Positions 5,347-10,056 of a DNA stretch of 64,000 nucleotides are shown piece by piece (the first letter of the stretch is position 1; every line of letters starts with the position of its first letter). Location of the stretch: contig JALMLS010000268.1 in the NCBI GenBank assembly GCA_038496445.1, forward strand, positions 372,001 to 436,000. The letters run 5' to 3'. The stretch comes from Trichosphaerium sp. ATCC 40318. Taxonomy: Eukaryota > Protista > Tubulinea. The notes below the pieces were generated by a model that was not told the origin of the DNA, searched no databases, and saw only the letters and a list, made by a program, of their open reading frames with translations. The translations under genes were made by a program, and so were the position numbers.

Positions 5347-8006
5347 TCACGTGACTCTCAAAACAGAGTTTTGAATAATAGGAGACGTGTTATAAGATAC
5401 AAACACGCTATAGGTACCAGGCGTTGGTGCAACGTACTCCGCGCTATGCGTACAGTTATAAATGGGTTGCATTGTACTAATAAAACGCGACGTACCGATA
5501 AATACCAGGGCTTTGAACAGCAATGTTTGCGTATAAGTTAGTAGGGCCTTCAATGCGTACTTTGATTCCATTCGGATTACTGATAGCCTACAGGAAAAAG
5601 TGAGCAATCACGTGACCAGCTAGTGCTGAGCGTGCCTTTGGAGAACCTGTGCCGTCCGTCACTGTAACAGTAAATGAAGATGGTATGCCAGCACGTGTCG
5701 TTGAAAGACCGAGACCTAAAGCAGAACATGTCAATAACAAGACATGATTACTAAAGCGCTTACCGCCCACTTGAAAGTTTGTAGCACCACCAGAACCGTA
5801 ACCAGAACTAGGCGAACCAAAGCTACCTCTTGGATTATATCCACCAGAGTTTGCATTAAACCCACGGTTTCCACCCCATCCTTGTTGTGGTTGTTGTGAA
5901 AATCCTGCAGCCGACTTGTAAGTAAAATAACCTACATGCGCAGCACATGGCTAGCAAGAAGAGGCTAATTCCATTCAAATAACTCCGCACCTCCATTTTG
6001 AAATACTGTCAAATTCTGAGAGAACATTGGTCTGTTTTGTATACTCACGTTTATAGCGTAAGGACCAGGTGCATTTGGCATAAAGTCAATGCCTGTGTCT
6101 CCATTGCCTAGATCATACACTTGTGGTGCCAGATTCACTGAAAACAAAGATTAGCCAAAATAAATGGAACCTACCTAAACAACGCGATAAACACCGTACT
6201 TGGACCACTGCATGTTGCTGAAACCTTTTCTAGTTCCAATTGTAGAGGCTCACTAAGTATACAAGTAAGCGTTTGTCACATGATAACCACGTGCCCTGTT
6301 GCATCTGATGTGGATAGGACATAGTGCGCCTTTCGGCCCATAGGCATGCTCTGAGGGCCAGAGAAATTGAATCGTTGTGACATGGCCTTTAGGAAAATAA
6401 GAGATTAAACTGAAAGTTTTTTGATTGGCTCACCGAGGAAGCAGGTCTTAGCTTGCGCATTGGTGCTGCATTGTTATTCCCAAACATGTTTGTGACTTGT
6501 GGTTGTATTGGTTGCGGCTGTACCTGTACCGGAACTGGCGTAGGTTGTGGAGAGTAAGTCACAGGCGCAGTTTTTGGTTGTGAGAAGACACCAGACGCTC
6601 TAGCCTAAAAAAACTAAATTATTGAGCCCAAACAAAAATCTGCATACCTGAGGAGTAGGTCTCACTGGTTCTGCCTTTGCTTGCTCGAGGCTACTCAACA
6701 AGTCTGATAGCTCGTTACTGGCTTTAGAGTCGATACCAGTCGGATGTGTGGTTGGAACACTTGCAGCTTCCCGGCGTGGTGGATCTTCAGGTATTGGATT
6801 CTGTCTGCGTCGCATCGATGATCTGGATGAAGCGTTGCTCCTCACGCTTGATCTGTCAGGGAGAGTTGATTGGAGATTAGCACTAGAGGCTTTTGTGTGA
6901 AACAAAGCGTTATCGTCCATTTGTGTAGGGTCGTATTCCTGAGGCGGATCGTGCAAGTCTGCTATCAGGTTATCCAACTCACTTAATCCAGAATCTTCTG
7001 GTTCTGCCGTTGGCATGCTTGGATCCAATCCACCACCTGCAAGTAGCCGCTTTAGCGGTTGTGACACTTAATTTAAAAAGAGAGATAATTGTACCATCTT
7101 CTAAATCAGCAATAAGCATGTCGAGCTCGTTGTCTACTGCTGTGCTCTTTACGGAGGCTCGCACACTTCTTGCAGCCATCCCAACGAGTCGATTCATTGC
7201 CATAGGATCTAGGTCACCATTAACACTGCCTCTGGTGCTCCCTGTGACACTAGGGGCGCCATAACTGGAGCGTGTATTGTATGATGCACCAACACTGCCC
7301 CTGCCAGCAGTGCTTGCAGGTTTGTAACTTCCTCTTGTACTACCTCGTCCGTTGTATCCTGTACTTGCTCTTGTATCGTATCCAGCTGTCCCAGACGCGT
7401 TTGCCCCATAACTGGATGTACTATCTCTGGTGGGTGTCTGTAAGAGAGTTAAATGGTAAAAACAGTAAATATAAAAACAAAAAAGCAAATTAGGACAAAC
7501 AAATTTAATCGTACGTAAGTTGAAGAGGTTTTTGGTTCTGGGTCGTACGAGTTGTCAGCAAAATCGTTATAGTCCAGGTCAAATTCAGACAGCCTACTTC
7601 TTGAGCTTCTAATCGTTGATCGTACATCCTCTTCCAACTCATTGACAAGAGCGTCTACGTCTGCTGTGTTGAGAGCGTCTACGAGAGTTCAGTAAATTGC
7701 TTTTCCCTGGAAGTTGTCTCAAATAGATGTAGAGGCGTTATAGTTTGTGTAAATGGCGCATAATGCAATCACGGAAAGCTTTGGCCCAAAAGGAAGTAAC
7801 ATTTTAGTAAACAAACAAGTAAACGCACCATCAATATCTGTTGTGCCCGTCATCCCTGAATCGACGCCCAACTCAGACATTAGTGCATCTAATTGAGACA
7901 TACTAGTATCGTTTGAAGGTACAGATGGCGTAGAGACGCTGGCACTAACTGTAACGCCAGCTTGTGCATTGTCAAAGTCTGCAAGTAAATTATCTAGCTC
8001 GTCCAT
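5347..8006 (-). CDS. LD-motif-rich disordered protein with two C-terminal filamin (Ig-like) repeats
   Basis: LD-like motifs MDELDNLLADF, QLDALMSEL, DVDALVNELE, ELDMLIADLE, ELDNLIADLH, ELSDLLSSLE. Filamin repeats DLGNGDTGIDFMPNAPGPYAINVSI and CSALGLGLSTTRAGIPSSFTVTVTDGTG..GIYRAEYVAPTPGTYSVFVSYN. Confidence 0.8.
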
Positions 8007-8276
8007 TTGATGTACTCAACTATTAACCACTACAGCAACGAGCGTTAGTCTTGTGTACGCGCAATCAACGTGTATTACACGAGTTGACCAATTGTAGCCA
8101 TTTGTGTTGGTGAAAGCGAAAAAACAGTTTTCGTCACAAAAATCGGTGGTACAGCTGAAAAAGAGCAATATTACACGCAAGCGCCTATTAGAAAGTATGT
8201 ACAAGTTGTTTATTTACATGAGTGTTTTTTTTTGATTGTTTTTTGGACAAACAAAACCCTTTTTTTTTTTTTTTTG

Positions 8277-9582
8277 TCACCTCTTTTTCTGAGAGTCCGG
8301 TTGAGTTTTTTGTTGTTCTGAAGCTATCAGTTTCGCGTGCCATTTCTCTGCTGCTTTAACGAATAGATTATCTACATTCATATTTGTTTTGCTTGAAGTT
8401 TCCATTATAAACTCAGCCTACATCACGTGGTCAAACAGATACGCGAAATAATCTGCGGAGACAAAAAAACAAGCGAAAAAAATTTTATGACATACACCAA
8501 CCAGTTGCCGCACTGTTTCAGCTGCTTCAGCAGTAACTTTCCTCGATTCTTCCAAGTCTCTTTTAGTGCCAGCCATTACCATAATCACGGACTTTGATGC
8601 GTATTTTGTAATTTCAGCTACCCATCTCCTAACCTTTGTAACAAAACGTCAGTTATCTTCAAACTACACTTTTTTGTTCGACAATGTGCAAATTTTTAAA
8701 GTACAAATACGTCGACGGCTAGCGTACCCCAACATCGAAAAATTGGTCTGTGGTGTCGTAGCATAATATGATAATATTTGCGTTGCGATAAAATGCTGTG
8801 GTGTTTGTCCTAAAACAGATTTAATAAAATCCTTCTTCCACGTGATTCAAATCGTTTTTTGAAATAAATCATATCAACAAACGACAATACAAGTAACTTT
8901 GATACCAATCGGAAAAAATGTAAAACTAGATAATGCGAGAGAGGAGAGAAAACATAACAATTTTCGTTACTTGTTGAGTAAAAAAAATTTCTTGGTTATT
9001 ACAATGCTCGTTAGTAACCAAAACGGAAAACAATTAAAAATAAAAAAAAACCCTTATTAACTCATAAATTGCTGAAATGATCTAAAACACCCTCAAAGGT
9101 AGTTCCTACAGTACCTAAATCGTTCTTGACCAGCCTAATATATATAAGACGGCGTATTAGCACCACAGCGTACCGAATCCCAGAGTTGCATTTTTATTTT
9201 TTGGCCTCCTGTGTTGATGTACTTTACGCGCTTGGATAAAATGTTACTTCTTCAATTGCGTATTACGATCTTTATTTGTGTTGACATACCAAGTCAATAC
9301 CCACAGTCGACGCTACGCGTTCAAATTTATTTTCTACAAGCCGGTGGGCTAGCATTGTCTTTCCTACGGCTGGAAAGATAGTATTTAGACGATAAAGTCT
9401 GCACACAGTATATTTTTACCTTGATCTCCAACAATCAGTACCTTACATAATCGATCGTAGTCCTTAGGACAGCTAACATGCCATTAGCGTCATGTAACAA
9501 CAAAAAAAAAATCTCTGTACTTTTCTTCCTTATTAAACGGTAAATCTATGCCAGCTCTCGATCCTGTGAGACAACCACCCAT
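8277..9582 (-). CDS. Rab-family small GTPase (Rab1/Rab8-like) with N-terminal MGGC and no C-terminal Cys
   Basis: Not called as a protein in the ORF track. Spliced: [89 protein letters not shown]. Confidence 0.88.
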
Positions 9583-10056
9583 TGGTGTAAATTTGGTAAC
9601 AAAACGGCAGTCTGTCACACATTGACTTGACGCGTACCCACTTAAACTCGAAACTGGTTATCGACTACGCCAACGCACTACGTCACCAGGCCTTTAGAAA
9701 GATTGGCATTCGACAAAGTGTACAACTCCGGAACAAAGATACCCACGTGATCAAAGGGGCACTATTAACTAAAGACGCTGGTGGGATTAGCGGACTATTC
9801 TCAAGAACTTCGCAGTTCACTAGCGCACTATTTCTAGAGCCGTGTAACTACCACGTTTCCGGTTTATTTTTACACCCTGTCATACTCCAAGAGTAAAGAA
9901 AACTGTCGGGAAATAAACACCTTTTGCGGGGTCAAATTACTTTCGGATACGGTACCCAATTTCAAATCTACGGAGTGGTGTTGTGTTGATACGTGCAAAT
10001 GCATGATGTCTTGCCGATAGCACTGAGGTTTGTCAAACTGAGGTAGTACGCTGTTA

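Follow-up and report, generated by a model that had tools for sequence, protein, structure and literature searches.

Can a Rab GTPase that belongs with Rab1 rather than with Rab5 be held on its membrane by the N-terminus? The question is raised by a gene in a stretch of 64,000 nt from the amoeba Trichosphaerium sp. ATCC 40318 (assembly GCA_038496445.1, contig JALMLS010000268.1, positions 372,001 to 436,000). This whole stretch is called the window here, and coordinates without a contig name refer to it. Textbook Rabs are defined by C-terminal geranylgeranylation and by cycling that is driven by the GDP dissociation inhibitor (GDI). To our knowledge, the studied exceptions that are anchored by N-terminal acylation are of Rab5 type only (ARA6 and Rab5B). 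The gene described here lies on the minus strand (9582..8277), and its predicted product begins with MGGC, ends with QKKR and has no cysteine in its tail. We read it, with moderate confidence, as a dually N-acylated, non-prenylated and very divergent Rab1-type GTPase that would be anchored without GDI.

The exons of the gene were joined by motif from the reverse complement of 9750..8150. Eight exons give a coding sequence of 633 nt and a product of 210 residues (Table 1). All seven introns (48, 50, 59, 39, 305, 94 and 78 nt) start with GT and end with AG. The fifth exon is a microexon (9115-9134), flanked by the introns of 39 and 305 nt. It is required, as it keeps both the frame and the motif, and read-through past it meets a stop codon. 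When aligned with Rab1-like and Rab18-like proteins, the spliced product was collinear and free of gaps at the junctions. Hence, homology backs the exon model independently. The match of the eight exons to Rabs is far above chance expectation, and the PDB matches of the individual exons were Rabs throughout. The published Trichosphaerium genome has a GC content of 37.7%, a mean intron length of 75 nt and ~8 exons per gene, and the window agrees with these values (PMC10521059).

The five GTPase motifs follow each other in order: GDQAVGKT (G1), the switch I threonine in STVG (G2), DSAGQE with the catalytic glutamine (G3), TKRD (G4) and SSK (G5). The residues that bind phosphate, magnesium and guanine are kept (GxxxxGKT, the switch I threonine, DxxGQ, the lysine and aspartate of G4, and SSK for SAK). 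The five RabF motifs (RabF1-F5: IGVDF, KLQIWDTAGQE, RFRSIT, YYRGA and LVYDIT) were all recognisable. VGIDL, FYRNA and LCYDTT stand at the RabF positions of the 218 Rab panel sequences, as conservative variants that are not identical to the motifs. The initial annotation of this DNA had listed the MGGC start, the QKKR end, the tail without cysteine, the Rab motifs and TKRD instead of NKxD at G4. All of these were read directly from the minus strand.

Rac/Cdc42-type GTPases normally have threonine where NKxD has asparagine, so nucleotide binding need not suffer from TKRD. A score of 176 bits with a hidden Markov model (HMM) of Rab1-type proteins means that the fold is well preserved. Judged by its residues, the product looks capable of GTP binding and hydrolysis. 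It may also resemble Rab24 (TKxD, ETSSK), which is a tentative lead.

The last exon closes with CAG AAA AAG AGG TGA, and the product with ...QPDSQKKR. In the model of 210 residues, cysteine occurs for the last time at position 107 (in LCYD), and the final 103 residues are free of it. The C-terminal geranylgeranylation motif of the Rab family (CC, CXC or CCX(X)) is absent from the predicted protein. With no cysteine at the C-terminus, geranylgeranylation is impossible, and so is carriage by the Rab escort protein (REP) or GDI via prenyl groups. An AATAAA-type signal had been reported behind the stop codon and is present there. The following gene on the same strand begins at 8006, which is 270 nt beyond the Rab stop codon. 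The 3' untranslated region of the Rab gene must therefore end within ~270 nt.

These statements depend on where the gene ends, and the gene model could be wrong in this respect: another first exon might be used, or an extra 3' exon might restore a prenylation motif. The sequence AG/GTGACA at 8280, which overlaps the stop codon, could serve as a donor. We paired each GT donor of the last exon with each AG down to 7600. Only one pairing adds an end that contains a cysteine (...QKKRCTNV), and the scan produced no credible prenylation exon. The ...QKKRCTNV end was rejected: it would need an acceptor (7888) that belongs to the coding sequence of the gene downstream, and CTNV is not of the Rab type (CC or CXC). 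The claim that the protein lacks a prenylation site thus survives the exhaustive GT/AG scan, which gave no plausible spliced exon to restore one, and the AATAAA lies downstream of the stop codon.

The first exon was examined as well. There is an in-frame stop codon at 9660-9658 and no ATG between it and 9582, which makes 9582 the first in-frame ATG. The frame of exon 2, when read through the preceding intron, contains a stop codon and no ATG. The next in-frame methionine lies in exon 3 and would truncate the P-loop. As no alternative in-frame start supplies strand beta-1, the MGGC exon is the sole start that gives a complete G domain. Taken together, we regard wrong ends of the gene model as very improbable.

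Two features were seen behind the Rab gene. The genome has 16 A directly behind the stop codon (8260..8275, minus strand), which could give internal priming in oligo-dT libraries. The next gene (window 7719-8006, minus strand) begins with MDELDNLLADFD, an LD-motif-like start.

The N-terminus of the product reads MGGCLTG. After removal of the methionine, G-G-C-L-T-G fits the PROSITE pattern PS00008, G-{EDRKHPFYW}-x(2)-[STAGCN]-{P}, as a pattern match only. A small uncharged residue stands beside the glycine, a threonine occupies the fifth place and no proline follows. A cysteine is found two residues from Gly2, which is the layout of dually acylated proteins. Between the lipid site and strand beta-1 there are ~22 residues, and there is no basic patch behind the lipid site. 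The N-terminal acylation signal proposed earlier, a predicted N-myristoylation consensus together with Cys4, is present.

In ARA6 and PfRab5B, dual N-acylation in place of prenylation was shown experimentally. Gly2 is needed for membrane binding, and the nearby cysteine directs or strengthens targeting (PMC3912013, PMC3871812). The same two papers bear out the background given in the initial annotation, namely that N-myristoyl/palmitoyl anchoring is known for the Rab5-group proteins ARA6 and Rab5b. Like ARA6/RABF1 of plants and charophytes and Rab5B of Plasmodium and Toxoplasma, the Trichosphaerium protein has a Rab G domain, an N-terminal extension of the MG(x)C type and no C-terminal cysteine. 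GDI-free anchoring by dual acylation would be expected for it as well. The cysteine is at position 4 here and at position 3 in ARA6 and Rab5B, whose lipidation was shown; for the Trichosphaerium protein it is predicted.

By analogy with ARA6/PfRab5B, Met1 would be removed and Gly2 would then be N-myristoylated co-translationally. Cys4 would be S-palmitoylated next, at the target membrane. The double lipid would tether the Rab G domain by its front, via the linker of ~22 residues. In this mechanism, the cycle of REP, geranylgeranyltransferase and GDI would be absent, and the protein would leave the membrane by depalmitoylation and not by GDI. We infer that the gene is expressed and that its product is lipidated and independent of GDI.

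The second part of the question is the type of the Rab. Database searches were run exon by exon, and the joined model of 210 residues was compared only locally, with imported panels. The Rab1/8/10-type panel was drawn with a profile (A4) that comprised two natural Rab domains plus the Rab gene's own exons as separate rows. The search with this profile returned canonical Rab1-type proteins. For the Rab5 panel, a natural Rab5-like domain was used as the query. This was the sole contrast panel, and it holds no ARA6, Rab5b or Rab24 sequences.

The joined model scored 175.6 bits with the HMM of the 106 Rab1/8/10-type proteins and 115.7 bits with that of the 112 Rab5 proteins, where the gene's own share in profile A4 has to be kept in mind. 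With a score 60 bits higher for the Rab1-type model than for the Rab5 model, and with switch regions of Rab1 type, it differs from ARA6 and Rab5B, which are Rab5-type. When majority states were compared, 26 positions agreed with the Rab1 panel against Rab5, and 11 showed the reverse. VGIDL in switch I and the sequence of switch II follow the consensus of the Rab1-type panel (IGVDF, ERFRTITSSYYRGA) and not that of Rab5 (IGAAF, ERYHSLAPMYYRGA). The best 60 PDB matches of exon 6 were Sec4, Rab1, Rab3, Rab8 and Rab12/26/27/30/43, with no Rab5 among them.

In a local BLAST of the joined model, the best proteins were P0238 (45% identity, 164 bits) and P0226 (43%, 161 bits), and canonical Rab1 reached ~141 bits. 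Four trees were calculated: three quick ones with posterior mean site frequencies, on 38, 60 and 35 rows, and a fourth under LG+F+G4 with 1000 ultrafast bootstrap (UFBoot) replicates. In all trees, the protein fell into a clade of four members, together with P0226, P0238 and the tandem neighbour of P0238 (97-100 in the Shimodaira-Hasegawa-like approximate likelihood ratio test, UFBoot 97). The Rab5 panel formed a separate 100% clade in all trees, with the Trichosphaerium protein outside.

The protein shares with canonical Rab1/Ypt1 the best-scoring family model, a G-domain identity of 38-45%, the RabF-type motifs and the catalytic glutamine. It differs from Rab1/Ypt1 in the missing CC tail, the acylation-type N-terminal extension, TKRD, GDQAVGKT, SSK and a very long branch, and it is not a Rab1 orthologue. 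With fair but not final confidence, we assign the predicted product to the Rab1 type and not to the Rab5 type.

Several results weigh against the reading as an N-acylated Rab1-type GTPase; they concern its placement, its isolation and its start. As to placement, the approximately unbiased (AU) test keeps a position within Rab5 (p = 0.385). It also keeps clades with P0249 and P0227, two Rab1-like proteins with putative acylation starts that are described below (p = 0.19), and with core Rab1 (p = 0.21).

The AU result for Rab5 bears on the idea that the protein belongs to the ARA6/RabF1-Rab5b group, i.e. that it is a Rab5-derived N-acylated Rab which the amoeba inherited or received by transfer. 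The ends of the protein are those of this group (Gly2, a nearby cysteine in an MG-(x)-C start and a tail free of cysteine). Moreover, the best PDB match of exon 7 was plant RABF2b, and exon 8 matched Rab5 chains best. The G domain, as compared with a panel that lacks ARA6 and Rab5b, is not of Rab5 type: its HMM score, its switches, the PDB matches of exon 6 and the maximum-likelihood trees all point away from Rab5. We give membership in this group very little credence.

The earlier claim of a Rab1/8-type Rab is thus upheld by the HMM, the diagnostic positions, the exon 6 matches and the trees, and the AU test does not reject a Rab5 placement. Grouping with ARA6/Rab5b had been named as the outcome that would count against it, and the trees place the product outside the Rab5 clade of the panel used. 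A further claim was that this anchoring had an independent origin in another Rab clade. Such an origin is likely but, with the Rab5 placement kept by the AU test and the acylation predicted from sequence, not proven.

As to isolation, the terminal branch of the protein measures 3.3-6 changes per column. A branch of this extreme length could reflect relaxed constraint. A search with exon 7 against 1.84 billion representatives gave no close relative; the 14 weak matches were tandem or misassembled Rabs or fragments. In a word search, the exon-7 frame had no three words in common with any protein of 42-133 residues, and hence no copy or partial product was found among these. The profile A4 search, in which a local simulation had given the full-length protein ~280 bits, did not return it within its best 120 matches. 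It may be absent from the searched protein collection.

The long branch, the lack of relatives above ~45% identity in the searches and the failure to find the protein in the collection would fit a paralogue that is silent or in decay. It would be one of many Rab duplicates that arose recently in this genome, and its MGGC start and the loss of its tail cysteines would be by-products of decay. Against decay, the frame is kept through all eight exons, and their splice sites are canonical, also those of the microexon of 20 nt. The nucleotide-binding residues of G1-G5 are intact, and the Rab1-type HMM score is high. A tail lost at random would not bring a consensus myristoylation start with it. We therefore hold decay to be unlikely.

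Other candidates from the searches were set aside. Fragments P0008 and P0012, from the weak matches of exon 7, were considered as orthologues and proved to be a Rab21/5-like and a Rab30/43-like gene, respectively. The single match of exon 7 in a metagenome scan was spurious and lay inside a bacterial flagellar operon. A search of the ESM Atlas with exon 7 returned generic Ras fragments only. Separately, a Logan contig (SRR19201356) carries a Rab21/5-like gene (L001:246-653) with GTKKD at G4 and a glutamate that replaces the catalytic glutamine (WDTAGEE).

As to the start, an out-of-frame ATG lies upstream (9620..9622, minus strand) and opens a reading frame of 29 codons (9533..9622) that overlaps the MGGC start. 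This upstream frame could reduce the use of the MGGC start, possibly in a regulatory role, and only if the 5' untranslated region reaches that far. Moreover, a Gly2 motif by itself is a weak predictor of myristoylation.

If the N-myristoyltransferase ignored Gly2, the product would be a soluble Rab-like protein without lipid, either cytosolic or held on membranes by a partner. There is precedent in two Rab7-like proteins of Acanthamoeba that have neither a tail cysteine nor a known replacement anchor (PMC10913462), and the evidence for myristoylation is of the pattern type described above. The pattern, however, fits in full (a small residue at position 3, threonine at 6, no proline at 7), and with the adjacent cysteine the layout is that of ARA6/PfRab5B. 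The MG-x-C start also recurs in P0249, which is Rab1-like and tail-less. We judge a soluble protein to be quite unlikely, and keep the dually acylated Rab1-type GTPase as the preferred reading.

P0249 is a Rab1-like protein of 203 aa that starts with MGACSS and ends with ...AMTQSPN, with no cysteine in the tail. It comes from two Joint Genome Institute samples, on contigs of ~1 kb with a single open reading frame (ORF) each (L005:321-932 and L006:42-653). Judged by its predicted sequence, P0249 represents the N-acylated, tail-less kind of Rab1-type protein independently of the Trichosphaerium genome. P0227, a Rab1-like metagenome protein, has GGCGQSK near the start of an ORF that is cut by the contig edge. 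Both resemble the Trichosphaerium protein in the MG-x-C or GGC start, but the trees do not place them together with it.

In the searched literature, which did not include two key works on Rab evolution, N-acylated, non-prenylated Rabs were confined to the Rab5-related ARA6/Rab5b group (PMC5869587, PMC3912013). What appears to be new here is an N-acylated, tail-less Rab of Rab1 type, as predicted from sequence.

Table 1. Exons of the Rab gene, predicted lipid sites and the signal behind the stop codon (window coordinates)
Feature	Coordinates	Strand	Content
Exon 1	9521..9582	minus	ATG 9582-9580, then GGT GGT TGT (M-G-G-C); donor AA/GTACAG; ends with 2 extra nt
Exon 1, predicted lipid sites	9521..9582	minus	N-myristoylation at Gly2, S-palmitoylation at Cys4 (both predicted)
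Exon 2	9420..9472	minus	Strand beta-1 and start of the P-loop; bordered by AG and GT; collinear with DYLFKLLLIGDS of Rab1-like proteins
Exon 3	9290..9369	minus	(A)VGKTMLAHRLVENKFERVASTVGIDL; remainder of G1 (GDQAVGKT), switch I including its conserved Thr, VGIDL (RabF1-like); weak Ras/Roc matches
Exon 4	9174..9230	minus	RabF2-like; G3 begins; collinear with Rab proteins
Exon 5	9115..9134	minus	Microexon of 20 nt, AGQERF(R); completes G3 (DSAGQE) including the catalytic Gln; AG and GT borders
Exon 6	8728..8809	minus	Switch II; RabF3-F5-like; weak Ras/Roc match
Exon 7	8496..8633	minus	VRRWVAEITKYASKSVIMVMAGTKRDLEESRKVTAEAAETVRQLVG; G4 = TKRD at 8567-8556; Pfam Ras E = 2.8e-7, 30.7 bits
Exon 8	8277..8417	minus	AEFIMETSSK... 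(G5 = SSK), helix alpha-5, Cys-free tail of 17 residues to QKKR; TGA 8279-8277
Poly(A)-signal-like motif	8209..8218	minus	TGTAAATAAA; AATAAA at 8214-8209, 63 nt past the stop codon; read directly

The nearest relatives found were P0226 and P0238 with its tandem neighbour (L008/L009/L040). Like the Trichosphaerium protein they are Rab1-like and have TKxD at G4. They differ in their CC-type tails, their ordinary short N-termini and their location on intron-less contigs of 19-29% GC. Ten residues are common to the Trichosphaerium protein and P0226/P0238 and rare in the 106 Rab1-type proteins. These include the threonine of TKxD (GTKxD), the cysteine of (L/M)CYD, the isoleucine of ANII and the serine of ETSSK. 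As six of the ten are amino acids with AT codons, composition may add to this signal.

The contigs in question (L007-L011 and L040; 19-29% GC) have no introns and are densely packed on both strands with ORFs that mostly lack a Pfam match. Two Rab genes in tandem are frequent on them. Relatives with 59% and 46% identity to a neighbouring gene on L007 occur on viral contigs of IMG/VR, one of which is 161 kb long. By these features, the contigs that carry P0226 and P0238 are probably giant-virus DNA. Rabs from bona fide giant-virus metagenome-assembled genomes are also Rab1-like, yet they are farther from the Trichosphaerium protein (at most 40% identity).

The tandem genes themselves (L008:2438-3997, L009:142-1701 and L040:818-2383) encode Rab1-like proteins of 206 and 217-219 aa with GTKxD and CC tails. 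An adjoining ORF of 161 aa has a weak match to the N-terminal domain of Syntaxin-6 (E = 0.003), and the surrounding ORFs have no Pfam match. The tandem Rabs and the Syntaxin-6-like ORF may together be a small cluster of membrane-traffic genes from a giant virus.

In the published Trichosphaerium genome, 1,581 gene models are reported to be of giant-virus origin, and ~40% of the putative virus-derived transfers have introns (PMC10521059). A tentative scenario, which we consider possible and on the whole doubtful, is that a Rab1 lineage of the TKxD type was exchanged between giant viruses and amoebae. The amoeba copy would then have gained introns and swapped its prenylated tail for an N-terminal exon with a dual-acylation signal. 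In that case, Rab anchoring independent of GDI would have arisen a second time, within the Rab1 type.

As a prediction for a single gene, the reading carries limited weight. If the link to virus-like Rabs is real, it bears on the trade in membrane-traffic genes between viruses and amoebae. If the anchor swap in a Rab1-type protein is true, Rabs have switched their anchor on more than one occasion in evolution. The Trichosphaerium gene would then be a natural test case for a Rab that is tethered by the opposite end and cycles without GDI.

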